Shown here: positions 13,116-50,053 of the stretch, in pieces
Layout: every line of letters begins with the position of its first letter
How positions within the stretch are numbered: the stretch's first letter is position 1
Source: Macrostomum lignano
Lineage: Eukaryota
Direction of reading: 5' to 3'
NCBI GenBank assembly: GCA_002269645.1
Contig: NIVC01000249.1
Location: forward strand, 186,001-250,000
Length of the DNA: 64,000 nucleotides
Made by a program: the position numbers and the translations under genes
The notes under the pieces: generated by a model
Databases searched by the model: none
What the model was told of the DNA's origin: nothing
What the model saw: only the letters and a program-made list of their open reading frames with translations

Positions 13116-13136
13116 AATTCCCCCCGGCAACAACAG

Positions 13137-27102: not shown

Positions 27103-30023
27103 ATGGAGGTGACGCTTCTTTTTGCCGTGCTTTGCGTCGCCGTCTGCTCGGCAGGTAAGAATTTCACTATGGCAGGGGTTCGAGCCATGAAAAATCACAA
27201 AAATGGCACAACTTGTCTCAATCGTTGTATGAATCTATTTCAAGTCATTCTGTAAGACATTTTGTTGTAAAAAATGAAAACCTCCAATATCCGTAATGCG
27301 ATATTTTTCCGTAAAACCTGCCTACTAAAACTTTCCAAGAAACGTAGCTTCCCGTCCTACTTGAGTTGTCCTTGATTAATTGATGGTAGGATGATAACCT
27401 GCTCTCTGTTCTCCAATCCAGGCAAGTTTCTTGGGGTTTTCCACCCGAGATTTGTCCTGCTATTTTTTTCACCCGCCGAGGTTTAGCTGTCAATTTTCGG
27501 TAGTTTGCCAGCCAAGAATTCGAAAGTCTGAGTCCTATTAGTTGCTAGGGCCTGTAGCGGCTACAGTGCATGCCTGCACACAGCGGCCCTTGAGGCTTAT
27601 GTGTACATCCCATTCTAATTTTATGATTCTCTGGTTGGAGACAGGAGAAATACAAGAGCTCCAGTGGATGCAGGGGCGCTAAGAGGGCGCCAAAAAAACT
27701 CGGCGGTAAAACTCGATGAAGTCCCTGAGTTGAGATGACCGGGGGGGGGGTAGACGCAGACACAATGTTCCTCAAAAAGCTTCTCTTCGATTTGCGCATA
27801 GAAACGTTGCTCCTGAGATGAAAATGCCCAACAACATCTGCGAGGATATGAGAACAGTAGCAGTAAAACACTATTAATGAAGAAAATGTGCTGCTTATAT
27901 GCAAAGCGTGTTGTGATTATGACCTATTAATACCGATTAAATTTTTGCAGCTCCAAAGCTGATTTTTAATTCAAAATTCTTGAGTCGATAGACGAACGTA
28001 TATTAGAATGCACAAGTCAACTTTGAATGTGCATCTTCAGTGAGGTAAAGCAATAGCACAGTGCACCTGAGTGAATGAGACATTGCTAAATTTCTGGTCC
28101 TGAGGATGTCAAGGTTTTTAGCGAAACGCGTTGGCTTTTTGCTGCTTTTGGAAGTTTAGTAAATTGAAATTCTCAGACCTGCAGGTGCAGCAGCTGCCGA
28201 AGAACATGCAGGCCAAGCTGTCAACCAAATGGACGCCGAGTGAAAACGCGAATCTCGGGAACAACGGCAATACCTCCGGGACGTACTACTCGGGCTCGCA
28301 GTGCGTTCACGCAGCGGGGGACGACACGCTGCCGTGGTGGATGCTAGACATGCAGACGGTGCGCCTGCTCAGCTCTGTGAGGATCTGGAACCGCCTCGAC
28401 TGCTGCTCCGGAAAATTCAGCAATGTCACATTCGGTAGGGGGAATTTTCTGTCTTCACCGATTGCCCTGCGCTGGCACTGACTTTCCCACGTCGCCCTGC
28501 TCTGCTAGGCGTCAGCGCTTTCGAATCCGTGTGGAGCAGCTTCAACTCGTCGCTGATTGACGAATGCTACCGTTACACCGGGGTGCCGGCGCACACGGAG
28601 AACCCTCTGAGTTTCACCTGTTCGCGACCAGTGGCCGGTCGGTACCTGACTTTGGAGAGAACGCCTGCATCCCCAGTGTACTTTCACTTCTGCGAGATTG
28701 ACGTCTACGTCTGTGAGTTTGCGGTGGTCTGATGGTAGGCCTCATCGAGGCACCCGGAAGCGGATAATACCTTATTTATAGCACACAGCCACGATATTGC
28801 GTAAAATGTAAGGCAAAAAATAAAGTCAATGTTTGCAAGAAGCCTGCGGCCACCCTAGCGCTTCGCCTTTGGCGACATCGCTCCACATCCAGCGCTGGGG
28901 CAATTCTGCCCGTTCCACATCCAGCGCTGGGGCAATTCTGCCCACTCCACAACCAGCGCTGGGGCAATTCTGCCCACTCCACAACCAGCGCTGGGGCCAT
29001 TCTGCCCATTCCACAACCAGCGCTGGGCAATTCTGCCCGTTCACATCCAGCGCTGGGGCAATTCTGCCCATTCCACATCCAGCGCTGGGGCAATTCTGCC
29101 CGTTCCACAGACTTCTGAGCACCTACAAGCAGTTCCACTTCCAGCGCTGGGGCAATTCTGCCCGTTCCACAGACTTCTGAGCACCTACAAGCAGTTCCAC
29201 AAGCAGCGCTGGGGCAATTCTGCCCGTTCCACAGACTTCTGAGCACCTACAAGCAGTTCCACTTCCAGCGCTGGGGCAATTCTGCCCGTTCCACAGACTT
29301 CTGAGCACCTACAAGCAGTTCCACTTCCAGCGCTGGGGCAATTCTGCCCATTCCACAGACTTCTGAGCACCTACAAGCAGTTCCACAAGCAGCGCTGGGG
29401 CAATTCTGCCCATTCCACAGACTTCTGAGCACCTGCAAGCAGTTCCACAAGCAGCGCTGGGGCAATTCTGCCCATTCCACAGACTTCTGAGCACCTGCAA
29501 GCAGTTCCACAAGCAGCGCTGGGGCAATTCTGCCCATTCCACAGACTTCTGAGCACAGACAAGCACGCACTCAGACACACGCTCTAGGGTTGGCCCTAAC
29601 GGTTGAGAATCTCAAGAAAAGTCACAAGCTTCAAATGGATGCGACCGCTCACGAAATCGAACCAGGGGTCGAATCATCGCGTTTACCACTGAGCTTCTCC
29701 GCCCCTCAACTAATGAGAGTCAGAGCATAGAATTTCAACATCGCCAACGCCCTTCGTCGCCTCCAGTCACGAAGTCCGCTCCGCACCGATTCCTGGACGC
29801 TCAGCCGATTTTCTCCACCGCCGCGGCGGCTCCTCTGATGGAGGTTCTCAGCATCCGGTCGCTCATCGAGTGCAGCCTGCGGTGCGGCGACCACCCGACC
29901 TGCCTCTACGCGATGCACTTCAGAACTGGCAGCTGCCGGTTCTTCCTGTCCCCGACGGTGCCGCTCAGCCTCCGCGACGGCTTCATCGCCGAGTCTGGCA
30001 GCTTTGTCGGCCTTGTTGGCTGA
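27103..30023 (+). CDS. Secreted F-type lectin (fucolectin/FTP domain) with C-terminal PAN/apple-like domain
   Basis: Exons 27103-27154 (signal peptide MEVTLLFAVLCVAVCSA), 28177-28434, 28509-28712, 29767-30023. Motifs CVH..PWW.LD..VRIWNRLDCCSGK, GRYLTL, FCEIDVY; then SLIECSLRCGDHPTCLYAMHFRTGSCRF. Confidence 0.85.
28870..29570. repeat. Intronic 31-nt minisatellite grading into a 62-nt higher-order unit
   Basis: The CAGCGCTGGGGCAATTCTGCCC core repeats at ~31-nt and then 62-nt spacing. Confidence 0.92.
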
Positions 30024-30639
30024 ACGTTGGATAAACAATCTGCATAAATCATTGCTAGGATCAGAGCTTAGCAATTACTGCCAAAATTTGTAGTCCTACT
30101 AATAAATAGAGCTTGTAAGTCCACAATTTCAAAGTATGATCCACCAAACCCCAATAGAAATTTCGGTCAATAAGGTTCATTTTTAGTATATAGATGAATA
30201 TCTTATGCAAATTACCAGAATGATGAAATTTTTTAAGTCGTATGGTATCTCTTTTTACAACTGTTTAGATATTATACAGTGTCAAAAGTTTTTTGTTGTT
30301 AAGAACAATAGCTTCTGTTTCTCGTTTGAGTTTCAGTTTACTTTCAGTAAAGTGTTTCTCAAATCTTGCAATTGAAGACTTCAGATTTAGAGAGAGCAAA
30401 TAAAATCGAATTTTTATAATAATTTTGAAGCCCCTTAACTTCAATCAAGATTTTTCGAATATTTGAATTGCGTTTCACTTTTGCGCCCTCACCTCACCTC
30501 CACCTCAGTGTTCATTAGAGAGTAGGCTTGAACAGAATAACTGAACACGGAGGCAGGGACAGCTACAGCTGAAGTAGAAAGACCAAAATTTGTCTATGGC
30601 TGAACCCTATTCAGGGCTATGCGTTCTCTGAAGCTCCGT

Positions 30640-31575
30640 GAGCGCTGTGTTGCATCCTTCTACATCAGCTGTCTAATTCATCTATGGCTAAATCCTATTC
30701 AGCGCTGTGTTGCATCCTCCTACTTCAGCTGTCTAATTCGTCTATGGCTAAACCCCATTCAGCGCTGTGTTGCATCCTTCTACTTCAGCTGTCTAATTCG
30801 TCTATGGCTAAACCCCATTCAGCGCTGTGTTGCATCCTTCTACATCAGCTGTCTAATTCGTCTATGGCTAAACCCCATTCAGCGCTGTGTTGCATCCTTC
30901 TACTTCAGCTGTCTAATTCGTCTATGGCTAAACCCCATTCAGCGCTGTGTTGCATCCTTCTACTTCAGCTGTCTAATTCGTCTATGGCTAAACCCCATTC
31001 AGCGCTGTGTTGCATCCTTCTACATCAGCTGTCTAATTCGTCTATGGCTAAACCCCATTCAGCGCTGTGTTGCATCCTTCTACTTCAGCTGTCTAATTCG
31101 TCTATGGCTAAACCCCATTCAGCGCTGTGTTGCATCCTTCTACTTCAGCTGTCTAATTCGTCTATGGCTAAACCCCATTCAGCGCTGTGTTGCATCCTTC
31201 TACTTCAGCTGTCTAATTCGTCTATGGCTAAATCCTATTCAGAGCTGTGCTGCATCCTCCTACTTCAGCTGTCTAATTCGTCTATGGCTAAATCCTATTC
31301 AGAGCTGTACTGCATCCTCCTACTTCAGCTGTCTGATTTGTATATGGCTAAATCCTATTCAGAGCTGTGCTGCATCCTCCTACTTCAGCTGTCTGATTTG
31401 TATATGGCTAAATCCTATTCAGAGCCGTGTTGCATCCTCCTACTTCAGCTGTCTGATTTGTCTATGGCTAAATCCTATTCAGAGCTGTGTTGCATCCTCC
31501 TACTTCAGCTGTCTGATTTGTCTATGGCTAAATCCTATTCAGAGCTGTGTTGCATCCTTCTATACTTCAGCTGTC
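30640..31575. repeat. 60-bp tandem satellite, ~16 units
   Basis: Exact 60-nt period (sequence lines align), with polarised variants toward the 3' end. Confidence 0.97.
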
Positions 31576-32244
31576 CATGCACGGAATTCTTCCATCAATA
31601 TTGGAGTGTCGTGACTCAAAGTGACCACTAATTTTATACTGGAGCAATGAGCGGTATTGAAATGCTACAAGCATTCATATTCATACTAGGCTCTATGATG
31701 CTCTATGAGTCTGTGAGTTTGAGATGAGTAGCGCTTCTTCAAAAAGCAACTCAACATCTTTACCGTGAATATTTTGCCAGCTTTTTTCACTCGGCACTGA
31801 AACTAATGAGCACAAAATTGCAAAAAAATTGTGGAAAAGTAGTGACTTTAAATTATTCCGATGCATCAAGAAGAATCGCAATAGTCAAGTCAACCCAATT
31901 GTTCCCGTGGGCTATACGGTGTTTAGTAAGAGTTTAAATAAAATATTGAATCTGTTTAGTTGATAGATTGGTCCCACTTGCGATTGCAGCAAGCAGACTC
32001 TGCGTTTCTATTAGTTGAGTTTAGTTGCTGTGGCAACTGCCCAAGCAGGACGAAGAGGGTAGAAGAGGTAAAAAGCAGACATGCAGGGCTGCTAAGCCAG
32101 GCTTTACTCCAGATCCCCATCGGCAGAAGTTCTCTGTTCCCACAAAGCCTGTGTTCTGTATTTTTTCATGCTGAAAATCCCTAACTAAAGAGGGACTCTC
32201 CACTTTTCTAAGTTGTTTTCGGACTCCGTTTAAAGCCTAGCTTA

Positions 32245-32400
32245 GGTGCCACTAGCATGGGAACACTGGAGACATTGTGGCTTAGGTACGACTAGCATGG
32301 GAACACTGGAGACATTGTGGCTTAGGTACCACTAGTGGGAACACTGGAGACATTGTGGCTTTATGTACCACTAGTCAGGGAACGCTGTAGACATTGCAGT
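32245..32400. repeat. ~41-nt repeat x3-4 (TAGCATGGGAACACTGGAGACATTGTGGCTTAGGTAC)
   Basis: Directly visible. Confidence 0.85.
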
Positions 32401-32719
32401 GACACAGCAGAAGCACTGGCACGATAGAGAACTGCAAGACCGAATAGGAGAAAGAGAAAGGGAACTTCTACTTCGGATAAGCATCAGATTCATGGATAAG
32501 AATGGTTGACCAATGCAATACCAAAGAAATCTAAGCACCTAAAAAGTTGCGAGTGCAGAACAGCCACGAGAGCGTCTCAATTCCAGGTACGAGTATGACA
32601 AACTTGCTATTATCATAGGCATCTCTCTAAACTGATAAACGGCGCTTTTACCTGCTTCTCTCATTGATTACCTTCTTTACCATCTTCTTTGACATGATTT
32701 GACTTTGCCCTTTAGGCAA

Positions 32720-33590
32720 ATGGCCACTCCAGCGAGTCCGTCACTGAGCAATGATTTGGAGATTCTTGGAAAAGCTTTATTTCTTGCACGTGAGAAGATA
32801 CGAAAGATTGGCGTAGCACTTATAATTCCAAAAGAACATCTTTATTCTGTAGATATTAATACAGAAGTTATCAACTCGAATTTGCCATTAATTATTGAAT
32901 TCAGAAGCACTCTGAAGGACTGCATTCGCACTGCCGAATCGTTGATTATTAAAGTATCAGGCATTTACAAGAATTACTTAAAATGTCTTGAAGAGCTGAA
33001 AAACATTGCGAAGTCGGGAACTCTGAAAACTAAAATTCCGAAAGCATGAAGGACACATTGACCAAGCTCGTCAGAAACTTTGAAGGATTCGGACGTGAAT
33101 TGGGTGAATTTGTGGAGCGCGTAAATGAGTTGCAGAGAGTGTCGGAGAGAGTGAAGGATGAGGCAACTTGGGAGGAACAGAAAGTTAAACAAGAGGCGGC
33201 CAGCGCGAGATCGGGGGCCCAGTCGGAAAGTCTTCTCCAATGGACGGCCGGCATTGCCACACCGGGCCTCATCACTCTAGGTAGCAGCTTCCAGGACTCG
33301 GTAAAGGCGAACAACGAACGGTATGAGAGGGCAGATGAGCTGGATGCCATTTTCCGAAAGTTCAACAGGGTTCGAGAAGTGCTGGACGACGCTTTTCGAA
33401 AAATCAACCGTGTTGCAGAAAGAATCGGGAGCCGTCCTGTCCAGCTTACAGAAGAAGTAACTCAGGTTATCCGAGCTGTTCTCCTGCAGTACGAGAAGAT
33501 TGCTGAAAGCAGAAAGCCGCTGAATTGAAGGAAAAAATGGAACGCAATCGCAGGGAGATATGGAGGAGATGAGAAAAAACCTGGGAAAGT
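32720..33590 (+). pseudogene. Disrupted copy of the helical ClyA-like protein family
   Basis: Homologous to 36772-37728 and 42815-43771. Frameshift near 33030-33046 (the ORF splits) and deletion plus premature stop in the C-terminal coil near 33510-33528. Confidence 0.8.
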
Positions 33591-35791
33591 AGCTAGCTGA
33601 TCGGCTTCTTATTCTGGACTCGTTGACTGAAATAATTTTCAAATTTTACTTCAGATTTTGACTAAAGAATGAAGCCGTGAAATCATGTTGCTTTATGGTT
33701 TTTCGAGAATAAAAATTTTCAGACTAAAAAGAAAGTTGTAACTTTATATATGCGAGCGTAAAATCACCCTCTTCAGTGTGTCCAACTTTTTTAGCCTAAT
33801 ATTTCAACTCACCTGAGATTTTTTAATTGTTAACTTATAGTACTTGTACTAATTCGTCAATATTTAAAAAATATAATCTGCAGGTGCGTGACACTCAATA
33901 GTTAGTTATCCTTACCGATATGGTTCACTATCTGAAATCTCTCTTTATTTGGCTGGCCATTGCTTACACTTTTTTGTTTGATTTTAGTTGTTATTCAATA
34001 AAAACCAATATTTCATCCAGCATCTTGCAAAGCGTTGTGAAATCATCGCGTATTCAGCATTTTATTAATGAAAGACATGCTCAAGTAGCCAATAGTTCAC
34101 TAAGTTCAGTGACCAACAGTTCAGTAGCCAATAGTTCAGTATAACAAACATCTTGCAGAACGCAGCGTGCAATGGATACTGAATCAAAGTAGCGTGCACA
34201 ACAAGCAACAGCAAGCAAAAGCATTAGAGGTGTGCACTGTAAAAATAAAAAGGGAATTTCATGCTGATACCTGTTGCAATCCTAAGCTAATTGAGAAAAG
34301 CATAGTTTAGTAGAGCTCTTTGCAGTGCTATGTAATTAAAAACAATATGCCTGATATATTCTGGAACAAATCTGGCTCTGAAGAAGTCGGATCTTTCTGG
34401 CACAGATGCTTTTTAATCGAATTTTTCTATGGCCAAACCTCATTCAGCGCTATGCGTTCTCTGGAGCATACTGAATGCACTGGCGACACGACCAACTTAG
34501 GTTTCTTTCTCCGGCTTGTTTGTCCTCACGGGCCCAACACGGGCTGAAACTAAACAAATTTATCGAAGAAAAAAATAATCGGCCGATCCAGCACCGAATT
34601 CCAGATGCTGCCTGTCTCCACACTGTCTCTGCAGTCTCCAGTTTGCACTGCACAATCGGCCATATTGGCAAGCGACAGGCCGCGTCGACATGAAAAATTC
34701 CAGCATGTCCGCAGCGCGCCATCGCTCACAGCCTGTCATGTGGCCGGGGCCAACACGAGTGCACAGGATAGAAAAATTTAGTAGCTGCTTAAATCGAATG
34801 TCCATGGGGCATAGACCTTTCCTTTGCTCCATGACTAAGTCTCTACTGCCCTGTTGGTTCACTTTTAATCTGCCCGTTTTCAGCACGATTGTAGCGAAAA
34901 AGCCGTGGGTTTGAATCGCATCACTCTTACTAAAAATCTGAGAAAAGTTAGAAAAGTTTTCAATGTCTGAGTCCACGTTTCCACCCCGACACCAGTTGTC
35001 AACTAGTGATAGCTTTAATCCAACTATTAGCCACAATTCTCCAGTTTCTCCTGGGGCATTGTGACGCAATTGCATCGCCCACACAGTTGAGACAACAAAG
35101 AACCGCACGCGTCAAGTAAATTGCGTTCGTATTAAAACGTATTTAAAAACCCCTGCTTTTATCTATAGGCTAAGTCGTATGCAAGGCCTGAGAACATCTC
35201 CAGGAACACACTTGAGATCTGCCTCAGTCGAATAACTATCCGACGATCGAACTTAGAAAAGCTTGTAAAGTCCGACCCTGAGATTGTTGCTATACATAAC
35301 GCCAAGTCCTTTCTTTACATTTAGCATTTCAAAGCTATTCAACATGGCTTACTCAGTTTGCTTAGGATCGCTAAGGATGCCAGGAGGAAGTTCCCTTTTC
35401 ATGTTTTAAAGTGCACACCTCTAGCTATTGCTTGTTATGCACTCTCCTTTGTGGCTTTGTCTCGATATTTGTTGCAGCACGATTGTACAATCTACTGTAC
35501 TGCATACGCTCGTAGAAGGCGGAAGTTCCCTTTTAAATATGCATCCCAATCCTACAATGGGTTATCCGGATAGATGCACTCGTAACTTAACTGTTGGTCA
35601 CTGAAGCAACTTCAGCATGTTTTCATTAAATAAACTGCTAATGTCGCCATGTCTTTTCACTTCGCTTTTGCCGAGTTTTGATGAAAATTAGATTTTTATT
35701 GAACAACAACTGTCGAATAGACAATAAACTAATAGAACGAGATATAAGTGGTGCAGAAAGGAAGAGAGGGGAAAGAAGTGAAGGGCCTAAG

Positions 35792-36180
35792 CATGGATGA
35801 ATGAATAGAATGGATTGCTATTCTGGCTCTGGCTATTTTCGTTTTTGACTCTTTTGCATCCGGTTCCCCCCGTGCCTTTTCATTGGTTGATGATTGCCAT
35901 AGACAGTTTTCGGCCTTCGCCCCTTTCTTTCGATGCACAAGCGCAAAGAACTGAGAATGTCAGTTACTTGCAGAGAATATCGAGCGCTCGTAGGTCTTCC
36001 CCCTTTATTTCAAAACACGAGCGAAAGCGCTTGTGCATCGAAAGAAAGGGGCGAAGGCCGAAAATTGTCTATGGCAATCATCAACCAATGAAAAGGCACG
36101 GGGGGGAACCGGATGCAAAAGAGTCAAAAACGAAAATAGCCAGAGCCAGAATAGCAATCCATTCTATTCATTCATCCATG
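35792..36180. mobile_element. MITE, 389 bp, ~155-bp terminal inverted repeats, 8-bp TSD (hAT-like)
   Basis: Arms 35792-~35944 and ~36026-36180 are reverse complements (CATGGATG..CATCCATG). Flanks GGCCTAAG and GGCCCAAG match at 7 of 8 positions. Confidence 0.85.
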
Positions 36181-36771
36181 GGCCCAAGCCGCGGGTTGAA
36201 GTTGTATTTATACTAACAATGATGAACAGGCCAGCCAAATTGTCTGTGGTAAATGAACGGTTACGATAGTCTGTGGAAAAGGCATGGTAGACAAAGGGAG
36301 ACGGCTAACTGAAAAGTACAAGGTAATAGAAAATACAAATATTTGGAGGATGGAAATCCGACAACTCACAGCAAACACAAAAATTTAAGCAATGGCCGGT
36401 CAAATAAAGAGAGAAATTCCAGGCAATCAATCATATCGTTAAGGATAACTTGTGAGTCTCAGACACTAGCAGATAAAAAAATGAAATCGTATTGATACGC
36501 TACAATACGAGCTACAATTTCAGTCTAACTATCGTACTTGACAATTAAAATTTATCAGGCGAGTTGAAATATCAAGTTAAAAGGAGACACACTGAAGCTG
36601 GTGATTTTATATATAAAGAGAGTTACTACGCTTGCTTTAGTCTGAAAATGTTTATCCGCATAAGATCATTAAAAACACGATTTCACCGCTTCATTCAATA
36701 AGGCAAAGTCTGGAGTAAAAATTAAATATGATTTCAGTCAGCAAGTCCAGAATAAGAAGCCCATCAGCCTG

Positions 36772-37728
36772 CTACTTTCCTTGGTTTTTTTTCATCTTCT
36801 CCATCTCCCTCCGCATGCGTTCCATTTCTTCCTTCATTTTAGCATTCTCCTTCTTTGATTCAGCGGCCTCCTGCTCTGCTCTAGCGGCTCTTTCCTCTGC
36901 TTCAACAGTTTGCTGCTGAGCTTGGGCAGCCTGTTGCTGAGATTCAGCAATCTTCTCGTATTGTAGGAGAACAGCTCGGATAACCTGAATTACTTCTTCT
37001 GTAAGCTGGACAGGACGGCTTCCGATACTTCCCGCAACACCGTTGATTGTTTGCAAAGCGACGTCCAGCAGTTGTCGAGCCTCCTTGAACTTTCGGAAAA
37101 TGGCATCCAGGTCATCTGCCCTCTCATACAGTTCGTTGTTCGCCTTTACCGAGTCCTGGAAGCTGCTACTTAGAGTGATGAGGCCAAATGTGGTGATTCT
37201 GGCCGTCCATTGACAAACATTGTTCCACTGGGCCTCCGATCTCGTGCTGGCCGCCTCTTTTCGAACTTTCTGTTCCTCCCGAGTTGCCTCATCCTTCACT
37301 CTCTCCGACACTCTCTGCAATTCTTTTACACGCTCCACAAATTCACCCAATTCACGTCCAAATCCTTCAAAGTTTTCGAGGAGCTTGGTCAACGCGTCTG
37401 TCATGTTTTTAACATTTTCAGTTGTCAGAGTTCCCGAATTCGCAATGTTTCTCAGCTCTTTCAGGCATTCTGAGTGATTCTTGTAAATGCCTGCCACTTT
37501 TCCACACAACGATTCGGCAATGCGAAGGCAGTCCTTCACAGTGTTTTTAAATTCCTGAAGGGATGGCAAAGTCACGTTGATGGAGTCCGTATTATTATCT
37601 ACCGACTCGAGTTGTTCCTTTGCCTTTCTTAGTTCTCCGCCAATCTCGCATATCTCCTTACATGCATTGAAAGCTTTTCCAAGACTCTCCAAATCCTTGC
37701 CAAGTGAGGAACTCGCTGGAGTCGCCAT
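36772..37728 (-). CDS. 318-aa all-helical protein with a central hydrophobic tongue; candidate ClyA/Hbl/Nhe-type alpha-pore-forming protein (copy A)
   Basis: Intronless ORF starting MATPASS. Amphipathic helices flank W174TARITTFGLITLSSSF190; C-terminal coiled coil. The ORF is solid; the fold assignment is inference. Confidence 0.7.
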   Translation of the reverse strand: MATPASSSLGKDLESLGKAFNACKEICEIGGELRKAKEQLESVDNNTDSINVTLPSLQEFKNTVKDCLRIAESLCGKVAGIYKNHSECLKELRNIANSGTLTTENVKNMTDALTKLLENFEGFGRELGEFVERVKELQRVSERVKDEATREEQKVRKEAASTRSEAQWNNVCQWTARITTFGLITLSSSFQDSVKANNELYERADDLDAIFRKFKEARQLLDVALQTINGVAGSIGSRPVQLTEEVIQVIRAVLLQYEKIAESQQQAAQAQQQTVEAEERAARAEQEAAESKKENAKMKEEMERMRREMEKMKKNQGK

Positions 37729-38373
37729 TTCTCTAAAAGTCAAAGTCAAATCTTATTAAAAATATTGATCAACGAAGGTAAAATCCGATTATCGGTTCAG
37801 AAATATGCCTCTGATATTAGCAGGATTGCCATAATTGCATACCGTTATAATTATAGCTATATTTCAAGAATGCGAGCACTTACCCGGAATGAGACGCTCT
37901 CGTTGCTGTTCTGCCCTTGCAACTTTGTAAGTGCTTAGATTTCTGTGCTATTATATGGGCCAAAGTAGAAGTTCCCTTTCTGCCGAATACGTAAAAAATT
38001 CGTGCTCAAGGCCAGCAGTGTGTACGAGTACGCTCGTACGCATCTGCTTGGCAAGTCGAAGTTCCATTTTCTTGGTCGGTCTCGCAGTTTGTGTGTATTA
38101 TTCGTACATAGAGGGCGAAAAATAATGCAGTACACACAATGTGCTCGGTTGATATACAAAAACTGAAGTTCCATATTAACCGTGCTCATTTAGCTCAGTG
38201 CATTTTTAAATTGATGCTGCAAGCGGGCCAATCCAGTGGCTTGTTTGTCTCCTGCCCATGCCTGTCGTTCACATTTCACTCTACAAATACCTGGCATCTT
38301 AGCCTCCTGAAGCGCAATCCTTTTCTACCCGCAACAGTTTTCATCACTCAAACCACAATTGTTCGATAAAATC

Positions 38374-39222
38374 ATGTCCGTACTTACAATATTTGAGAGT
38401 TCGCCCGAAAGTACTGTCAAAAAAGCCAACAAGTTTAAGCTGAAGCAGAACTGGACTCCAGCAGGAAGAAAATTTAAGGAAGCCGCTGAGCTCTACCGTC
38501 AGAAAGGGGAAGACTTTGAGGTGGCAAAGTGTCTGAGCGAGGCGGCCAACTGCTTCGTCAAGGATGACGCACGCTTAGCGATTCTGGCACTGAATGAGGC
38601 GGCTGGAATCCACGGCGAGCTCGGCCACGTAAACTTTGCTGCCGGAATGCACAAGAATGTCGCCGAGTGGGCGGTGGGTCTGGAGCGCAAGATGCCCGGA
38701 CACCTTCTCTGGACTGATGTTGGCGGCCACTCGCAGCTCGATCAGCAGGAACGCCAAGCCTTGGAGAAGGAGCTGCAAGAGTCTGCTCTGAGCCTGGCAG
38801 CCAGACAATATGCCAAGGCGGCTGATCTATACAGAATGGAAAATAGTCCAGCGAACGAGGCCGAGTGCCGCGAGGAGAGAGCCAAGGTCCTGGCTGACAA
38901 GGGCGATGGGCAGCGAGCTGCCGACGAGTTCAAGGAGCTGACGAGACACGCTGAAAAGCACGAGCTGCTCAGCGCCAGAAAGCACGCGTTCCAGGCCTGT
39001 CTGTGCAGACTGGCGGCCGGACTGGACCCGGAGGTGGACGAGATCGGACGGGAATGTCCGGACTTTGCCAGGTCCGACCACAGCCAGTTGGTGCGGGACC
39101 TGGCCGCGGCTGCAAGTGAGACGGCTGTGATGGAGGCCCGGCGCAACTTTGAGAAGTTCAACGAGTTCGACAAATGGCAGGAGAGGCGGTTCGCCGAAGT
39201 GAAGCGCGGGAAGATACAGTGA
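38374..39222 (+). CDS. Divergent, N- and C-terminally truncated alpha-SNAP (NSF attachment protein) homologue, intronless CDS
   Basis: KANKFKLKQNWTPAGRKFKEAAELY..FEVAKCLSEAANCFVK..AAGMHKNVAE..YAKAADLYRME..AFQACLC..PDFARSD..FDKW tracks the alpha-SNAP TPR-like helices (AANMFKMAKNWSAAG..AAKHH.SIAE..SADYYKGE..FKAALC..PAFSDSRE..LDQW). Confidence 0.85.
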   Translation: MSVLTIFESSPESTVKKANKFKLKQNWTPAGRKFKEAAELYRQKGEDFEVAKCLSEAANCFVKDDARLAILALNEAAGIHGELGHVNFAAGMHKNVAEWAVGLERKMPGHLLWTDVGGHSQLDQQERQALEKELQESALSLAARQYAKAADLYRMENSPANEAECREERAKVLADKGDGQRAADEFKELTRHAEKHELLSARKHAFQACLCRLAAGLDPEVDEIGRECPDFARSDHSQLVRDLAAAASETAVMEARRNFEKFNEFDKWQERRFAEVKRGKIQ

Positions 39223-39619
39223 CAGCTCAAGAACCGTCGAGAACTACCGAGGAGCGAACTGATGTGAACATGACATTGTACTTTAATAGAACTGAACTTC
39301 AAATCTAACGCTAAGACTTGTTCTTGGATCAAAGAATATAAGATCTATGCCTTGGATACATGGGTCTAAAATTGTCGCACATGATTAATGGGATTCTACA
39401 ATAAAAATTAATTATTTTCAAGCAAAAATTATTACTCTTTAATATCGTTCATCTTGATTATAAAGCAATACATTCTGAAGTAAAAATTCATACCTAACAT
39501 TTTGCGAACTGTTTTTAGAAGAAGCATAACCCACATTATCAATGCATCGTTTCCTTAATTTCGAACTCTTATAATAATAATAACAAAATAATTGATTACA
39601 CCTGCCTAATTGGGCAGAC

Positions 39620-39844
39620 TTTTGAAGGCTGCGGGCTGTTCAGCTCAAGGACTGGGGGGGGGGGGTCCTCCCACATACCCCCAATTACCCCAGCTAATGC
39701 TGACACCCATTTTACAGCTGGGTGAACTGAAGCAATGCAGAGTTAAGTGTTTGCTCAAGGACACAAATTGTTCTGATTGGGTCGAGAATCGAACCCCCGA
39801 CCTTTCAGTTGTGAGTCCGACGCTCTAGCCACTTGGCTACAACC
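39620..39844 (-). mobile_element. tRNA-derived SINE family A, most complete copy
   Basis: Reverse strand reads GGTTGTAGCCAAGTGGCTAGAGCGTCGGACTCACAACTGAAAGGTCGGGGGTTCGATTCTCGACC followed by the TGTGTCCTTGAGCAAACACTTAAC core. Confidence 0.8.
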
Positions 39845-39914
39845 TCTTCTCTTATGAACTCGTATGCGCTTCATGCAAGTAAACCAATAAAGGTAGATAA
39901 ATGTAAAAAAAATT

Positions 39915-40030
39915 AATAATAATTATTACCCATCCAACCGGGCTACTACATCCTCTAAACAGAGTCAGAGCTGCTCAGCTCAGTGGACAATGGGTCGGGC
40001 TCTTCATGGCTTAATTGTGCAGCTCAATTC
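39915..40030 (-). mobile_element. Short LINE 3'-end fragment
   Basis: Homologous to 44876-44970; TAA/T-rich tail on the minus strand. Confidence 0.55.
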
Positions 40031-41424
40031 CATGAGGTACGTAATGTACGCATTTTTCGGAAAACTTGCCTCTTAAAATTTTCCAAGAAACGTAGCTTTC
40101 CGTCAATCCTAATTGCGTTGTCCTAGATTTGTCTATGGCGAAACCTCATTCAGCGCAATACGTTCTCGAGAGCTCACTAAATTCACTGGCGAAACGATAA
40201 GTTTACGTTCCTTTCCAGCTTTCTAAGAAAATCGTCCTGCGACATGCTACAAGTACTTCGGCTGCCCATGTTTAAACCATCTCACGGGCCCAACCGGACT
40301 GAAAATAAATTTGTTTATCGGAAAAAAGATCTGCCGATCCAGCACCGAATTCCAGATGCTGCCTGTCTCCACACTGTCTCTGCAGTCTCCAGTTTGCACT
40401 GCACAATCGACCATGTTGGCAAGCGACAGGCCGCGTTAACATGAAAACTTCCAGCATGTCAGCAGCGCGCCATCGCTCACAGCCTGTCATGTGGCCAGGG
40501 CCATCACGAGTGCACAGGATAAAAAAATCAAGTAGCAGCTTTAATCCAATGTCCATGGTGCATAGACCTTTCTTTTCCTCCATGAATAAGCCCTATTGGT
40601 TCACTTTTAATCTGTCTGTTTTCACCATGATTGTAGCGTAAAGGCCGTGGGTTTGAATCGCGTCACTCTTACTGAAAATCTGAGAAAAAATCTCAGTGTC
40701 TGAGTCCACCCATTCACACCTCAGCAACATGTTTTAGCTTAAAATCCAACTCTTAGCCACAATTCTCCAGTCTCTCCTGGGACATTGTGACGCAATTGCA
40801 TCTTCCACACAGTTGAGACAACAAAGAACCGCGTGCGTGGTGTAAATTGCATTCGTCACTTGAGGCTGAGATCTGAGGAGAGTTCTCAGATTGGAGAAAA
40901 TCCGTGCAGCTGTTAAAATAGTTGTCCAAATGCAAATAATAGCTATTCGTATTAAAACGTATTTAAAACCCCTGCTTTTACCTATAGGCTGAGTTGTATG
41001 CAAGGCCTGAGAACATCTTCAGGAACACACTTGAGATCTGCCTCAGTCGAATAACTATCCGAAGATCAAACTTAAATAAAACTTCTAAAGTACGACTCTA
41101 AGGTTGTTTGTATGCATAACGTCAAGTCCTTTACATTTAGCATTACAAAAGCTATTCAGCATGGTAACTCAATTTACGTAGGATCGCTAAAAATGCCAGA
41201 AGGAAGTTCCTCCTAATTGCTATTGCTTGATATGCACTCTCTGTAGTACGATTGTACATTGTACTGTACTGCATGCGCTCGTAGAAGGTGGAACTTCCCT
41301 TTTAAATGTACATCCCAATCCTACATTGGGTAGCCAGAGAGATGCGTATGGATGGAGTTTGGTAGATTTACTGAAATTCCCAGGTGAGCACTGACTGTCT
41401 ACATGATTTTGATGTTTTCGATTC

Positions 41425-41485
41425 GAGTGAGGGCTTACCGCCAGATGAGAGGACTTTGAGGTAGCCAAATGTCTGAGCCAGGCAT
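41425..41485 (+). pseudogene. Internal alpha-SNAP-like relic
   Basis: TACCGCCAGATGAGAGGACTTTGAGGTAGCCAAATGTCTGAGCCAGGCA matches 38494-38545 (YRQ..DFEVAKCLS.A). Confidence 0.7.
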
Positions 41486-41489
41486 TGCT

Positions 41490-42590
41490 TACTGAATTGT
41501 TGGTCACTGAACTATTGGTCACTGAACTATTGGTTACTAAATTGTTGGTCACTGAACTGTTGGTCACTGAACTATTGGTCACTGAACTATTGGTCACTGA
41601 ACTATTGGTCACTGAACTATTGGTCACTGAACTATTGGTTACTAAATTGTTGGTCACTGAACTGTTGGTTACTGAACTGTTGGTCACTGAACTATTGGTC
41701 ACTGAACTATTGGTCACTGAACTATTGGTTACTAAATTGTTGGTCACTGAACTGTTGGTTACTGAACTGTTGGTCACTGAACTGTTGGTCACTGAACTAT
41801 TGGTCACTGAACTATTGGTCACTGAACTGTTGGTCACTGAACTGTTGGTCACTGAACTGTTGGTTTACTGAACTATTAGTCACTGAACTGTTTGTTTACT
41901 GAACTGTTGGTCACTGAACTGTACTTGGTCACTGAACTGTTGGTTTACTGAACTATTAGTCACTGAACTGTACTTGGTCACTGAACTGTTGGTCACTGAA
42001 CTGTACTTGGTCACTGAACTGTTGGTCACTGAACTGTTGGTCACTGAACTGTACTTGGTCACTGAACTGTTGGTCACTGAACTGTACTTGGTCACTGAAC
42101 TATTGGTCACTGAACTGTTGGTCACTGAACTGTTGGTCACTGAACTGTTGGTCACTGAACTGTTGGTCACTGAACTGTTGGTTACTGAACTGTTGGTCAG
42201 TGAACTGTTGGTCACTGAACTGTTGGTTACTGAACTGTTGGTCACTGAACTGTTGGTCACTGAACTGTTGGTCACTGAACTGTTGGTCACTGAACTATTG
42301 GTCACTGAACTATTGGTCACTGAACTGTTGGTCACTGAACTATTGGTCACTGAACTATTGGTCACTGAACTGTTGGTCACTGAACTATTGGTCACTGAAC
42401 TATTGGTCACTGAACTATTGGTCACTGAACTATTGGTCACTGAACTATTGGTCACTGAACTGTTGGTCACTGAACTATTGGTCACTGAACTATTGGTCAC
42501 TGAACTATTGGTCACTGAACTATTGGTCACTGAACTATTGGTCACTGAACTATTGGTCACTGAACTATTGGTCACTGAACTGTTGGTTAC
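41490..42590. repeat. 15-nt minisatellite (ACTGAACTATTGGTC), ~70 units
   Basis: Directly visible; gives the spurious TNSSV/LVTEL ORFs. Confidence 0.97.
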
Positions 42591-42814
42591 CTATGGCCGG
42601 CCAAATAAAGAGAGATTTCAAGCAATCAATCATATCGTTAAGGATAACTTGTGAGTCTCACACACTTACAGATAAAAAACTAAAATGGCAAATAATACAC
42701 TACAGGACAAGCTACTATTACAGTATAAATATTGACGAATTGGAATATATATCGTACTTAACAATTAAAATATATCAGGCGAGTTGAAATATCAAGATAA
42801 AGCCGATCAGCTGG

Positions 42815-43771
42815 CTACTTTCCTTGGTTTTTTTTCAACTCCTCCAGCTCTCTTCGCAGGCGTTCATTTTCTGCCTGCGCTTCAGCTTCCTTCTTCTTCA
42901 ATTCAGCGACCTCCTGCTCTGTTATAGCGGCTTTCTCCTCTGCTTCAATGCTTTTCTTCTGAGCTTGGAGAGCCTGTTGCTGAGCTTCAGCAATCTTCTG
43001 ATATTGTAGGAGAACAGATTGGATAAGCTGAATTACTTCTTTTGTAAGCTGGACAGGACGGCTCCCGATTCTTTTCCCAACACCGTTGATTGTTCGCAGA
43101 GCGACGTCCAGCAGTTGTCGAGCCTTCTCGAACTTTTGAAAAAGTTTATCCAGTTCTTCTGCCCTATCATACCGTCTCTTGTTCGCATCTACCGAGGCCT
43201 GATAGTAGCTTGTTTGAGTGATGAGGCCAAATGTGGTGATTAATTCCATCCATTGATAAAAATTGTTCCAGTCGGCCTCCGATCTCGTGCTGGCCGCCTC
43301 TTTTCGAACTGTCTCTTCCTCCCGAGGTGTCTCATCTTTCACTCTCTCCGACACTCTCTGCAACTTTTTTATGCGCTCCACAAATTCATCCAAGTCACGC
43401 CCGAATCTTTCGAAGTCTTCGACGAGCTTGGTCAACGCGTTTTTCATGCTTTCAGCATTTTCATTTGTCAGAGTTCCCGAATTCGCAATGTTTTTCATCT
43501 CTTCGAAACATTTTGAGTGATCTTCGGCAATGCCTGCCACTTGACTATGCAACGATTCGGCAATGCGAAGGCAGTCCTTCACAACGTCTTTAAATTCCCG
43601 AAAGGGCAGCAAAGTCACGTTGATGGTGTCTGCACTAGTATCGACTGACTTGAGTTGTTCTTTTGCCTTTTTAAGTTCTTCGCCAATCTCTTTTATCATT
43701 ACACATGCATTGAAAGCTTTTCCAAGACTCTCCAAATCCTTGCCAAGTGAGGAACTCGCTGGAGTTGCCAT
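42815..43771 (-). CDS. 318-aa helical ClyA-like protein (copy B)
   Basis: Intact and colinear with copy A (same length, identical first 23 aa). Tongue segment WMELITTFGLITQTSYY. Confidence 0.7.
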   Translation of the reverse strand: MATPASSSLGKDLESLGKAFNACVMIKEIGEELKKAKEQLKSVDTSADTINVTLLPFREFKDVVKDCLRIAESLHSQVAGIAEDHSKCFEEMKNIANSGTLTNENAESMKNALTKLVEDFERFGRDLDEFVERIKKLQRVSERVKDETPREEETVRKEAASTRSEADWNNFYQWMELITTFGLITQTSYYQASVDANKRRYDRAEELDKLFQKFEKARQLLDVALRTINGVGKRIGSRPVQLTKEVIQLIQSVLLQYQKIAEAQQQALQAQKKSIEAEEKAAITEQEVAELKKKEAEAQAENERLRRELEELKKNQGK

Positions 43772-44479
43772 TTCTCTAAAAGGCAAAGTCAAATGATATT
43801 AAAGAAGCACCCCCCAGCAACGAGAGAGGCAGATAAAACGCCACTTTTCAGTTCAGAAAGATGCGTATGATAATAGCAGGGCTTTCATAGTTGCAATTGT
43901 ATAATAATAAAGCCGTTGGCTCAATAATGCGTGCACTTACTCGTACCCGGAAGTGAGACGCTCTGGTTGCTGTTCTGCACTTGTACCTTTGTAGGTGCTT
44001 AGATTGATTTGGTATTGTATTAGTTAACAACTTATATTTATGAATCTAATGTTTATCAAAAGTAGAAGTTCCCTTTCTGTCGAGTATGCACACAGCTCGT
44101 ACTTCAGGTCAGCACTGTGTACACGCCTGCTTGGCAAGTCAAAGTTCTATCTTTCTTGCTCGTTCTCGCAGTTCTCATTGTGACTATATTCGCACAGAGG
44201 GTTATAAAATCTTGCAGTTCACACAATGTGCTTGGTTGATGAACAGGCAAAAATTGAAGTTCCATATAAGCCGTACTCATTCAGTTGTGCATTCTTAATT
44301 TTATGCTGCAAGCCCACCAATCCAGTGGCTTGTTTGTCTCCTGCCCCCAGTGGGTGTGAACACAACACATCCACAGGCCGGGCATTCAATGTATTTAGCC
44401 AGGCATTGTTTGACTTCTGAAGTGTGTTAATTTAATCTGTTTATAGCTACTCAAAACATTTTTCACGATTCAAACTATT

Positions 44480-44558
44480 TTATTTGATAAAAACATGCCG
44501 ATATTTGAGAGTTCGACCAACAGTCCGGGACTCGCTGCGACAGAACTGAACTTCAAAG
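44480..44558 (+). pseudogene. Internally deleted alpha-SNAP-like gene of unit B
   Basis: TTGATAAAAACATGCCGATATTTGAGAGTTCG matches the SNAP start (38362-38403) and lies ~30 nt from AGAACTGAACTTCAAA, which matches the SNAP 3' flank (~39287-39302). Confidence 0.75.
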
Positions 44559-44864
44559 TTAGCCGTCATTATTCGCCTATGATTGATATGATTCTATTCG
44601 GATTTCTAAGAAATTATAAAGTTTATTAATTTATTTATTAATTTAGTTTTAAAAAAATAGAAAATTTATTACTTTCTACTTTATATTGTTGTTAATAACG
44701 TTCCTCTTGAAAATTAAATTGCACATGAAGTAAAAAATTCAAACTCGCCGTTCTGGGCATTTCTTGAGAAAAAAGCATGTCCCACATTGTAAATTCTTTA
44801 TTTCGAACTTTTTTGCAGTGCCGCACTACCAGTAAATCAATAGAGGTAGTTAAAAGTACATTTA

Positions 44865-45440
44865 CACGGTTATTAGCCATCCAACCGGACTACATCCTCC
44901 TAACCAGACTTGCTCAGCTCACCGGACAACGCATCGGACTCTCAATGGCTGAACTGTGCAGCTCCCTCCCACGAGGGCCAATCCTACCAAACACTTTGAC
45001 TCAACTGCAGGAGGTTCCGGGAATCCGGATACAGCAGGAGGCGGTCGAAGTCCATTCCGCAAACCCCTGACAACCACAGGCAGCTGGTACTGCGGTGTTG
45101 CGAAGGGAGATTGTGTGATTCTCCTAGCCATTTAGGTATCGGACGAGCTGGCAGATTCTCGGGCCTGAAAAATGTCGGAAAGGTCCGGGTGTGGGCCGAG
45201 GTAGGTGAGCCTGTTGAGTACAGGCGGGGCATTCACAGATGAAGTGCTCCGCATTCTCGACACCGGAGAGACAGAATGAGCATTCCTCACTGCGGATTTT
45301 CCCTGGAGGTCGCGATGCCTGGCAAAACAGCCATGGATGCCGCGCGGGATTGCCGGCAGTCGGGGGCGTCGGCCCACCACTCCCTGTGCTTACCGTAGAC
45401 GTCAGCCACTGGTTAATCCGAGTAATTTTGATGACTTTTT
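44865..45440 (-). mobile_element. Non-LTR retrotransposon (LINE) 3' fragment
   Basis: Minus strand encodes EECSFCLSGVENAEHFICECPA, then ..RLTYLG after a frameshift; this is the C-terminal CCHC-type motif typical of LINE ORF2. Confidence 0.7.
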
Positions 45441-48114: not shown

Positions 48115-49415
48115 CTGGGATCTAATCTCATGCCAATCTGCTCTGTAGTGAATCTAATCTCATGATAATAGGATCCTATCTGTATAATCTTTAAATAATA
48201 AGATCTTATTTAGATCTAATCTCATGATAACAAGACCTGAGCTTGATCTAATCTCATGATAATAGGAGCTGTTTGATCTAATCTCATGATAATAGGATCT
48301 GTTTGATCTAATCTCATAATAATAGGAGCTGTTTGATCTAATCTCATGATAATAGGATCTCAGCTTGATCTAATCTCATAATAATAGGATCTGTTTGATC
48401 TAATCTCATGATGATAGGAGCTGTTTGATCTAATCTCATAATAATAGGATCTGTTTGATCTAATCTCATGATAATAGGATCTGTTTGATCTAATCTCATA
48501 ATAATAGGATCTGTTTGATCTAATCTCATGATAATAGGAGCTGTTTGATCTAATCTCATGATAATAGGATCTGTTTGATCTAATCTCATAATAATAGGAG
48601 CTGTTTGATCTAATCTCATGATAATTGGATCTCAGCTTGATCTAATCTCATAATAATAGGATCTGTTTGATCTAATCTCATGATAATAGGATCTGTTTGA
48701 TCTAATCTCATGATAATAGGAGCTGTTTGATCTAATCTCATGATAATAGGATCTCAGCTTGATCTAATCTCATGATAATTGGAGCTGTTTGATCTAATTT
48801 CATGATAATAGGAGCTGTTTCATCTAATCTCATGATAATAGGATCTGTTTGATCTAATCTCATGAAAATAGGATCTCAGCTTGATCTAATCTCATGATAA
48901 TATGATCGCAGCTTGATCTAATCAAATAATAATAGGAGCTATTTGATCTAATTTCATAAAAAAATAGGAGCTGTTTGATCTAATCTCATAATAATATGAT
49001 CGCAGCTTGATCTAATTTCATGATAATTGGAGCTGTTTGATCTAATCTCATGATAATAGGATCTGTTTGATCTAATCTCATGATAATAGGATCTCAGCTT
49101 GATCTAATTTCATGATAATTGGAGCTGTTTGATCTAATCTCATGATAATAGGATCTGTTTGATCTTATCTCATGATAAAAGGATCTCAGCTTGATCTAAT
49201 CTCATGATAACAAGACCTCAGCTTGATCTAATCTCATGATAATAGCTGTTTGATCTAATCTCATGATAATAGGATCTGTTTCATCTAATGTCATGATAAT
49301 AGGATCTGTTTTGATCTAATCTCATAATAATTTGAGCTGCTTGATCTAATCTCATGATAAAAGGACCTCAGCTTGATCTAATCTCATGATAACAAGACCT
49401 CAGCTTGATCTAATC
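48115..49415. repeat. 30-nt minisatellite (TGATCTAATCTCATGATAATAGGATCTGTT)
   Basis: About 43 units upstream of the BAP18-like start, possibly in a 5'UTR intron. Confidence 0.95.
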
Positions 49416-50053
49416 TGATAATAGTAAGAATGATACCAACAAAATATTGCTCTATAATTGCACGAGTAACATTACTGGATGCACTCAGTCTCAAGCTACT
49501 TAGCCAGTACACAGTCGGATTTAAAAAAAAAATTCGTCTGCAAAGCGCCTCTGCAATACATTTAAAGAGAAATGTGAACAATGTATTTCATATCCAGCCA
49601 GCCAGACAAAAAGCAGTTACATAAAAATCCGACATATCAATGCCGACACAGACATAAAAGATAGACTGAAAATATTGATAAAGTTTATTAAGACACTGAA
49701 TAAAAATCTGGACGGAAATGACAATAATTCTATTTAATTAAGTGGATCTGAAGCCTTACAGCGCGTATATAAACTAAATTCCAAACTTTTTTCGCAATTT
49801 TTTACCTACTATGAGTAGTGCTGGGTGACAAAATTTATTTAGAACTATCGCATGTGTAAATAGTTATTTAAAATACAACATAGATTCTCCGCAGCGTACA
49901 TACTACTTAAGCTAGTAGTGTTAAACTATGGGCAGTGGCGGATCAACGCTCCATTGAGTAGGGGGGAGATGAACACGGATCCAGCGAGGTCAGGAAGTGC
50001 AGACAGACTGTTAGATGAGTTGGTGCTCAAAAAATCTTTTTTATTAGAAATCT

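Follow-up and report, generated by a model that had tools for sequence, protein, structure and literature searches.

Head-to-head pairing of a degenerate alpha-SNAP gene with an orphan helical-protein gene at two loci of Macrostomum lignano

The two genes described here lie head to head in a 64,000-nucleotide stretch of the Macrostomum lignano genome (contig NIVC01000249.1, positions 186,001 to 250,000), which is called the window throughout. One of them, helical copy A, encodes an all-alpha, lineage-restricted orphan protein, and the other, SNAP-like 1, encodes a degenerate paralogue of alpha-SNAP. As judged from the assembled sequence, the genome contains a second locus, reported here for the first time, with the same head-to-head layout, at which the relatives of the two products are 33% (helical) and 44% (SNAP) identical. 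We tentatively favour, at somewhat less than an even chance, the explanation that the two are lineage-specific, co-regulated partner genes, and that a SNAP scaffold unfit for SNARE and NSF binds or regulates the helical bundle protein whose gene lies on the other side of the spacer.

Arrangement of the gene pair

The coding sequence of helical copy A occupies 36772-37728 on the minus strand as a single coding exon (an open reading frame (ORF) of 318 amino acids plus the stop codon). The coding sequence of SNAP-like 1, also a single exon, occupies 38374-39222 on the plus strand (282 amino acids plus stop; Pfam family PF14938). These ORF coordinates agree with a preliminary description of the DNA, in which the two genes were reported to diverge from ATGs 646 bp apart. 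The spacer between both ATGs (37729-38373, 646 bp, assigned to no strand) is presumed to be a shared bidirectional promoter. The copy A protein is 68-70% identical to the M. lignano proteins P0001 and P0002.

Recurrence of the layout at a second locus

A distant helical paralogue, helical 2 (P0004), which is 32.6% identical to copy A, was found on three M. lignano contigs. On all three it was placed head to head with the gene of P0006 (SNAP-like 2), a PF14938 protein of 287 amino acids that is 43.5-44.6% identical to SNAP-like 1. Two of these contigs are designated L002 and L003. The orientation was that seen in the window, the ATGs were 835 bp apart, the helical gene again had a 5' untranslated region (UTR) exon and an intron, and no further gene was called within ~10 kb on either side of the pair. 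The preliminary description had proposed a search for linked homologues elsewhere, and this pair, at 33% and 44% identity in the same genome, provides such linkage. Each locus with one of the two families also has the other (2/2 loci). In addition, SNAP-like 1 and SNAP-like 2 have derived features in common, namely the N-terminal start, an insertion, and a non-acidic tail; the tail of SNAP-like 2 is basic (GKRAGPRLA).

An exhaustive search of 1.84 billion representatives with a hidden Markov model (HMM) of the helical family retrieved M. lignano proteins only. The sole close relative found with the SNAP-like profile was P0006 of M. lignano, and the next matches were generic SNAPs of 22-30% identity. 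Homologues outside M. lignano were found for neither family among 1.8-5.8 billion proteins, in databases that may lack other Macrostomum transcriptomes.

Variation at the second locus followed a pattern opposite to that at the first. The helical gene and the spacer were 100% identical between L002 and L003 (8730-9593), and 10 residues of SNAP-like 2 were different, with about half of the changes falling in the internal insertion (MKSKSRFGQFGQ versus MKRQIRFRQFCQ). Just downstream of helical 2, L002 also carries a fragment of SNAP-like 2 (12243-12022, minus strand; residues 37-109, 84% identical). This fragment indicates that, at the level of the assembled contigs, the unit was partially duplicated in tandem at the second locus too.

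SNAP-like 1 has lost functional residues of canonical alpha-SNAP

SNAP-like 1 matched PF14938 with an E value of 6.9e-35 and a score of 121 bits, where the cut-off is 25, and the match reached position 279 of the 282 in the profile; alpha-SNAP chains in the PDB were matched with E values of ~1e-16. It is colinear with alpha-SNAP residues ~40-285, and the alignment showed that the TPR-like solenoid and the C-terminal helical bundle are retained. Its N-terminus corresponds to about residue 31 of alpha-SNAP, so that helix alpha-1 and the greater part of the membrane-interacting loop are gone; its C-terminus (...VKRGKIQ) falls at about residue 288/289, six or seven residues before the end of the 295-residue alpha-SNAP. 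The term truncated, which was used in the preliminary description, is therefore appropriate, with the addition of a ~30-residue internal insertion after residue 98. A hidden upstream exon with the SNAP N-terminus was considered and rejected: the ATG of SNAP-like 1 is preceded by an in-frame stop at 66 nt and that of SNAP-like 2 by one at 24 nt, the former precluding a further in-frame extension of the SNAP-like 1 exon; three-frame translation of the spacer gave nothing SNAP-like; and the public model for SNAP-like 2 is complete and has one exon.

In the HMMER alignment, the concave face of SNAP-like 1 showed the changes K122>G, K163>E, and K167>E and a deletion of K199/Y200, and K203>R was the only conservative change. 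We take K122, K163, K167, Y200, and K203 to be SNARE-contact residues of alpha-SNAP. The same alignment showed D217>G, E249>A, and E252>S, at positions that are presumably acidic contacts to NSF, and the acidic tail D290-R295, which includes L294, was missing. K163, Y200, and K203 have been named on the concave SNARE face of alpha-SNAP, and mutation of L294 makes alpha-SNAP dominant negative (PMC12019078). With helix alpha-1 and the loop, the SNARE lysines, several presumed NSF contacts, and the tail all lost, SNAP-like 1 appears unlikely to drive NSF-dependent SNARE disassembly. The dN/dS ratio between the window gene and its syntenic counterpart was 0.35.

The helical protein resembles long helical bundles in general, without recognizable ClyA ancestry

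The helical proteins matched no Pfam family above threshold, and the coiled-coil noise differed between paralogues. The AlphaFold2 model of copy A consisted of five long helices, with a mean confidence (pLDDT) of 69 from the single sequence and 77 with five paralogues. The protein is very hydrophilic (grand average of hydropathy (GRAVY), -0.7) and has neither a signal peptide nor a transmembrane segment. Its conserved, mildly hydrophobic motif W..W..I.TFGLIT..S..Q..V.AN forms the tip in the model; the most conserved segment runs W168...I178-T-T-F-G-L-I-T...N197 and is just mildly apolar. The N-terminus and the blocks ANSGTLT, RKEAASTRSEA, TFGLIT, and IGSRPVQLT are invariant among copy A, its syntenic counterpart A', and a second window copy, B, and the tail is a variable, Q/E/K-rich coiled coil.

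The preliminary description had called this protein ClyA-like, and this assignment did not hold. The Pfam families HlyE (PF06109) and Bacillus HBL (PF05791) gave no match at E <= 1 in five helical family members. The helical family HMM scored 1.4 bits against Escherichia coli ClyA, a score that 160 of 2000 shuffled sequences equalled or exceeded, and hhalign gave a probability of 0.6%. The hydrophobic head is absent as well, since the maximum of the 15-residue Kyte-Doolittle average was 1.07 in any paralogue versus 1.87-1.91 in ClyA. In Foldseek searches of the PDB with two models, ClyA, AhlC, MakA, MakE, PaxB, and XaxA recurred, all with E > 1e-3 and template-modelling (TM) scores of 0.2-0.53. 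For ClyA the values were E 2.6e-3 to 6e-3 and TM 0.3-0.44, and for AhlC TM 0.44-0.53, from models with pLDDT values of 69-77; designed bundles and axonemal coiled-coil proteins ranked equally. Copy A residues 154-159 and 181-184 and ClyA residues 172-177 and 190-193 present KVRKEA/KIRKEA and FGLI(T/I) in the same order, in an overall alignment that is not significant. After Pfam, the PDB sequence search, the HMM with shuffled controls, hhalign, hydropathy, and Foldseek, ClyA homology was rejected at the family level, and what remains is a generic resemblance to long helical bundles.

Other assignments were also rejected. A four-helix-bundle death domain of the RPW8/MLKL/HeLo type was suggested by a UniRef name and by a SesA match. 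The latter scored 19.2 bits in two of five members, below the cut-off of 26.3; Pfam RPW8 gave no match, and neither MLKL, HeLo, nor CC-R structures were among the Foldseek matches of the helical models. The automatic UniRef names of two helical paralogues conflict (RPW8 versus I/LWEQ), which suggests spurious profile hits. A syntaxin/SNARE-like or BAR-like protein was indicated by noise-level Foldseek matches only, without Pfam support.

Duplication of the unit and loss of SNAP-like copies

Helical copy B (42815-43771, minus strand; an ORF of 318 amino acids plus stop) is 69% identical to copy A at the protein level and one residue away from UniRef A0A1I8J5V1 of M. lignano. At the DNA level, 36757-38257 of unit A corresponded to 42800-44346 of unit B with 79% identity, and a more sensitive search extended the match to 38412, which is ~40 nt inside the SNAP coding sequence. 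The region upstream of copy B (43772-44538, assigned to no strand) is homologous to the spacer of unit A and ends in a remnant of the SNAP gene followed by the deletion junction. Within this flank, 43743-44524 is colinear with 37700-38412, and the SNAP ATG is kept at 44495-44497 together with ~40 nt of coding sequence. The alignment then jumps to the SNAP 3'UTR (~39284 in unit A); the 3'UTR and 3' flank remnant of unit B (44539-44976, plus strand) corresponds to 39284-40037, with 44656-44976 matching 39400-40037. The retention of the spacer, the SNAP start, the 3'UTR, and the flank in unit B indicates that, as read from the alignment, the pair was duplicated first and unit B then lost ~870 bp of its SNAP coding sequence. 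Duplication as a unit, which had been proposed in the preliminary description, is confirmed by the colinear flank, the surviving ATG, and the 3'UTR remnant. An inverted helical pseudogene is present at 32720-33516 on the plus strand, with a frameshift near 33034-33046 and a truncated C-terminus; 33507-32506 matches 36943-37963 with 78% identity.

Contig NIVC01003389.1 (L001) is syntenic to ~27971-44580 of the window, and the order of pseudogene, copy A, SNAP-like gene, and copy B is preserved in it. The identity between the two was a mosaic of 85-100%. A hyperdivergent haplotype centred on gene A was considered and rejected: gene A, at ~85%, is at the low end, yet identity on its left is no more than 85-94%, and gene A is therefore not claimed to be exceptional. 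In L001, the SNAP-like gene (9527-8691, minus strand; tail ..VKRGTRP) has TGG>TGA at codon 113 (W113*) and adjoins an intact helical gene, A', which has the public gene model P0001. The pseudogene copy of L001 also has stop codons. The DNA of the copy B counterpart, B', matches that of B at 98.5-100% identity but contains indels, which may be assembly errors.

The dN/dS ratios of the helical genes were 1.13 (A versus B), 0.80 (A versus A'), and 0.62 (A' versus B), and the changes were mostly replacements. All three genes keep full ORFs, and ~0.2% of neutral simulations with an equal number of substitutions stayed open. Such values would fit selection that keeps the ORF, together with diversification.

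Several repeats accompany the cassette. A ~1-kb segment is duplicated at 34525-35577 and 40281-41323 (84-91% identical) and marks a ~5.8-kb tandem repeat unit that contains the helical/SNAP cassette. The minus-strand ORFs of this segment (34560-35108 and 40272-40583) had no Pfam match, and it carries more copies of the octamer GGAACTTC described below. Between units A and B, ~72 copies of a 15-bp satellite, ACTGAACTGTTGGTC, occupy 41491-42587. In L001 the satellite is found at two places (5330-6357 and 11731-13191), and the number and size of the arrays vary between haplotypes.

The spacer contains a conserved 5'UTR intron and an overrepresented octamer

The public gene model P0001 in L001 is spliced as ...CATTCTGG/GTAAGT...TTTTAG/AGAAATGGC, with the intron at 10063-10232 of that contig. 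The window counterpart is a 150-nt GT..AG intron at 37733-37882 on the minus strand (donor CCGG/GTAAGT, acceptor TTTTAG/AGAAATG). The 5'UTR intron that had been proposed from the letters of the window is therefore confirmed by a public model that uses matching sites at a syntenic place. The 5'UTR exon 1 of copy A (37883-37955, minus strand; upstream end approximate) was delimited by alignment of A, A', B, and the pseudogene, and it is the best-conserved non-coding block among these four. The 'partial' coding sequence of P0001 runs through the equivalent exon, and the public helical models read through the spliced 5'UTR exon.

The spacer and the 5'UTR exon are conserved between copies in the alignment. 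The upstream region had been described as conserved in copy B and partly so in the pseudogene. For copy B, this extends to the whole spacer with both splice sites; for the pseudogene (upstream region 32440-32719), the 5'UTR exon is kept and the donor has been deleted.

The octamer GGAACTTC occurs three times on the minus strand of the spacer between copy A and SNAP-like 1 (37968-37975, 38058-38065, and 38165-38172), twice in the spacer of unit B, and once upstream of the pseudogene; the further positions in the window are 44065, 44256, 32461, 35387, 35522, 41203, and 41290. The window contains 11 copies against 2.4 expected, a count that was reached in 0 of 100 shuffles, and the copies are surrounded by the conserved blocks ..ATGGAACTTC.. 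and ..GGGAACTTCTACTT... The octamer is a candidate transcription factor site of a putative shared promoter. The spacer of the second pair has no full GGAACTTC and just a partial GAACTTC, so that conservation at that locus is not clear.

Transcription of the SNAP-like genes

SNAP-like 1 corresponds to mikado.scaf249G20 of a published data set (PMC12896417), in which its best match is BOX15_Mlig015185g2 with 44.6% identity and 97.2% coverage; both values were reproduced here. The gene is assigned to subgenome S without an original Mlig ID, and no other gene is more strongly down-regulated in the subline DV1_10 (2n=10) compared with DV1_8 (2n=8) (PMC12896417, Tables 5, S4, and S5). Its log2 fold change is -4.93 (~30-fold lower), with an adjusted p of 0.011 and a baseMean of 11.6, and SNAP-like 2 (scaf2633G8, chrL) has a baseMean of 107 and a log2 fold change of +0.78 (PMC12896417). 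These values show that SNAP-like 1 is transcribed at a low and variable level. Both sublines have an equal copy number of subgenome S, and DV1_10 worms are viable, more so than DV1_8 worms (PMC12896417). It is plausible that the lower expression in DV1_10 reflects an allelic difference, such as a nonsense allele combined with mRNA decay. This would offer a possible explanation for the top down-regulated gene of the M. lignano aneuploidy data set, which is not discussed in the text of that paper (PMC12896417). In a gene-ID search of the supplements of M. lignano papers, only the SNAP-like genes were matched and only in PMC12896417; the helical genes were not among the matches listed.

Interpretation of the pair

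According to the explanation that we tentatively favour, the genes would form a Macrostomum-restricted two-gene module transcribed divergently from a single short spacer. One gene would supply a 318-residue cytosolic, all-helical, elongated bundle protein, and the other an alpha-SNAP-derived TPR-like solenoid without the canonical SNAP determinants. The SNAP-derived scaffold may have been re-used to serve the co-expressed helical bundle as an adaptor or chaperone; the bundle could lie in the concave groove where alpha-SNAP accommodates the four-helix SNARE bundle. The module would duplicate as a unit, surplus SNAP-like copies would then be lost by deletion or nonsense mutation, and the helical paralogues would meanwhile stay open and diversify quickly. 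The data establish the anatomy of the pair, its family assignment, the lost residues, the duplication history, the second conserved pair, and transcription; the co-regulation, the physical interaction, and the biological role of the pair are what we infer. Most animals have a single alpha-SNAP gene (PMC6712407). M. lignano is an animal with two old SNAP-derived genes in which all tested SNARE and NSF hallmarks are gone and purifying selection persists, each gene standing head to head with an orphan helical gene. If the proteins interact, the SNAP groove would have been re-used for a non-SNARE helical client, and a flatworm-specific gene family would gain a function.

Several points weigh against this explanation. 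The linkage at the second locus could represent neighbours inherited through segmental duplication, and two independent pairs (n=2) are too few to give a test of co-evolution any statistical power. SNAP-like 1 may be decaying rather than acting as a partner: its expression is weak (baseMean 11.6), its L001 allele has a nonsense codon, and the gene is deleted beside copy B. Furthermore, the helical genes are not among the matches listed in the differential expression table in which SNAP-like 1 shifts ~30-fold; their absence, if true of the full table, would argue against tight co-regulation. A more far-reaching form of the proposal appears rather unlikely. It would hold that this is an undescribed animal two-component module, in which the stripped alpha-SNAP scaffold is a dedicated chaperone, inhibitor, or adaptor of a fast-diversifying, possibly membrane-active or immune/conflict-effector helical partner, the unit being inherited and duplicated as a whole and the SNAP-derived partner gene being polymorphic between haplotypes.

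The two genes may also be neighbours only, and we regard this as a possible, though less than probable, account. The shared spacer would then be a historical accident propagated by one segmental duplication, and SNAP-like 1 would be redundant and in the process of being lost. The W113* allele in L001, the clean deletion of SNAP beside copy B, and the low expression of SNAP-like 1 with ~30-fold variation between viable sublines are all in line with such a loss. A breakpoint within a spacer of 0.6-0.8 kb is improbable in any case, and the retained adjacency is therefore weak evidence. However, the ORFs of both families are intact at both loci despite identities of 33-44%, the derived architecture is common to both SNAP-like proteins, and the dN/dS of the SNAP-like gene is 0.35 and not 1. 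Strict co-occurrence of two otherwise undetectable families at 2/2 loci likewise speaks against mere neighbourhood. It is improbable, in turn, that the SNAP-like protein is a trafficking regulator, that is, a competitive or dominant-negative factor acting on SNARE/NSF or other clients, with the helical protein as cargo, modulator, or unrelated neighbour. The clear membership of the SNAP fold family, the retention of the penultimate leucine in SNAP-like 2, and the loss of the acidic tail with L294, which is the lesion of the NSF-defective, toxic or dominant-negative Rhg1 alpha-SNAPs and of L294A, agree with it. A dominant-negative action requires SNARE binding, yet K122/K163/K167 are replaced by G/E/E, Y200 is deleted, the membrane loop is absent, and the presumed acidic NSF-contact residues D217, E249, and E252 are lost.

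The preliminary description saw in the pair a candidate toxin-antidote layout. In a toxin-antidote or selfish element, a helical toxin would be neutralised by the linked SNAP-like protein. Points in its favour are the tight linkage, the orphan status and lineage restriction of the helical gene, its dN/dS near 1, the flux in copy number, and the pseudogenes, together with the allelic polymorphism of the SNAP-like gene and the strong difference in SNAP-like 1 expression between sublines. The evidence nevertheless makes this reading quite improbable: in L001 an intact helical A' lies beside a SNAP-like gene with W113*, copy B is without a SNAP gene, so that an antidote is not present beside every intact helical gene, and DV1_10 worms are viable, more so than DV1_8 worms, with ~30-fold less SNAP-like 1 RNA, with the caveat that an intact SNAP-like copy elsewhere in the polyploid genome could act in trans. 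Moreover, copy B and the other helical genes are without membrane-toxin hallmarks, and the helical gene of the second locus is identical between contigs and not hypervariable. Less probable again, and very unlikely, is a true alpha-pore-forming toxin of the ClyA family that is kept soluble by a TPR-like chaperone, comparable to type III secretion translocators with their TPR chaperones. Six ClyA-family members recur among the top Foldseek matches, the order and lengths of the helices resemble those of ClyA, and K[IV]RKEA ... FGLI appears in the same order as at ClyA 172-177 and 190-193. Against these resemblances stand Foldseek E values that are all > 1e-3 with TM scores of 0.2-0.53, equalled by designed bundles and axonemal proteins; an HMM score no better than that of shuffled sequences; an hhalign probability of 0.6%; the lack of a Pfam match; and a tip segment that is mildly hydrophobic in a protein with a GRAVY of -0.7.

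Comparison with known systems

SNAP-like 1 belongs to the same fold family as canonical alpha-SNAP/Sec17 (PF14938) and is colinear with it over residues ~40-285. It differs from these proteins by the absence of helix alpha-1, the membrane loop, the SNARE lysines, and the acidic tail with L294, by the ~30-residue insertion, and by being a single-exon, lineage-restricted, weakly expressed gene. The resistance-type alpha-SNAPs of soybean Rhg1 are NSF-defective and cytotoxic (PMC6712407). Both they and SNAP-like 1 are non-canonical alpha-SNAP paralogues whose C-terminus is atypical where NSF is activated, and in both cases the gene belongs to a block of several genes that is repeated in tandem and varies in copy number (PMC6712407 for Rhg1). 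Unlike SNAP-like 1, the Rhg1 alpha-SNAPs keep the N-terminus and the SNARE-binding face, and the last few residues alone differ. Moreover, the partners in the Rhg1 repeat are an amino-acid transporter and WI12 rather than a helical orphan, and Rhg1 toxicity is countered by an unlinked NSF allele. The analogy drawn in the preliminary description therefore holds at one point, the loss of the NSF-activating C-terminus. With the basic SNARE-contact residues of the SNARE face and the membrane loop also lost, a simple Rhg1-type dominant-negative role is doubtful.

Duplicated SNAPs with specialised roles are also present in the protists Leishmania and Giardia (PMC12019078, PMC6172762), and Leishmania alpha-SNAP2 has the same K163>E charge inversion as SNAP-like 1 (PMC12019078). 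In contrast to SNAP-like 1, the protist paralogues keep the membrane loop, the aromatic/basic SNARE face, and a functional C-terminal leucine, and they show no specific pairing with a neighbouring gene. The helical protein resembles the ClyA family (ClyA, AhlC, MakA/E, and XaxA) in being an elongated helical bundle of ~300 amino acids with a conserved apolar mid-sequence segment, and it differs from that family in lacking sequence or profile similarity and a strongly hydrophobic head or beta-tongue and in being a eukaryotic cytosolic orphan.

The animal toxin-antidote elements peel-1/zeel-1 and sup-35/pha-1 of Caenorhabditis elegans consist of linked, lineage-specific, fast-evolving genes in structurally dynamic regions. 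The helical and SNAP-like genes are likewise tightly linked, lineage-specific, and fast-evolving in a structurally dynamic region. The nematode elements are marked by toxicity, maternal or paternal delivery, and drive, and the M. lignano pair differs from them in that one haplotype combines an intact helical gene with a SNAP-like gene that is broken. A literature search retrieved no paper that joins 'toxin-antidote' with 'flatworm', and its matches for non-canonical alpha-SNAP paralogues were from protists, plants, and mammals.

Other features of the window

The window DNA is rich in satellites. Large tandem arrays at 30641-31575, 48119-49423, and 61680-63347 have periods of 60, 30 (also 92 and 122), and 32 bp, and several arrays produce long spurious ORFs. 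An ORF at 7515-8747 on the plus strand probably represents a single exon of a larger gene; its C-terminal end matches the start of a CAP/cysteine-rich secretory protein domain (E 3e-6). An intact ORF of 388 amino acids at 19490-20656 on the minus strand encodes a rhodopsin-family G protein-coupled receptor (Pfam 7tm_1, E 2.5e-53). An uninterrupted retrotransposon pol ORF of 1317 amino acids at 51592-55545 on the plus strand encodes protease, reverse transcriptase, RNase H, and integrase; it lies in a GC-rich block (~60%) with satellites on its flanks.

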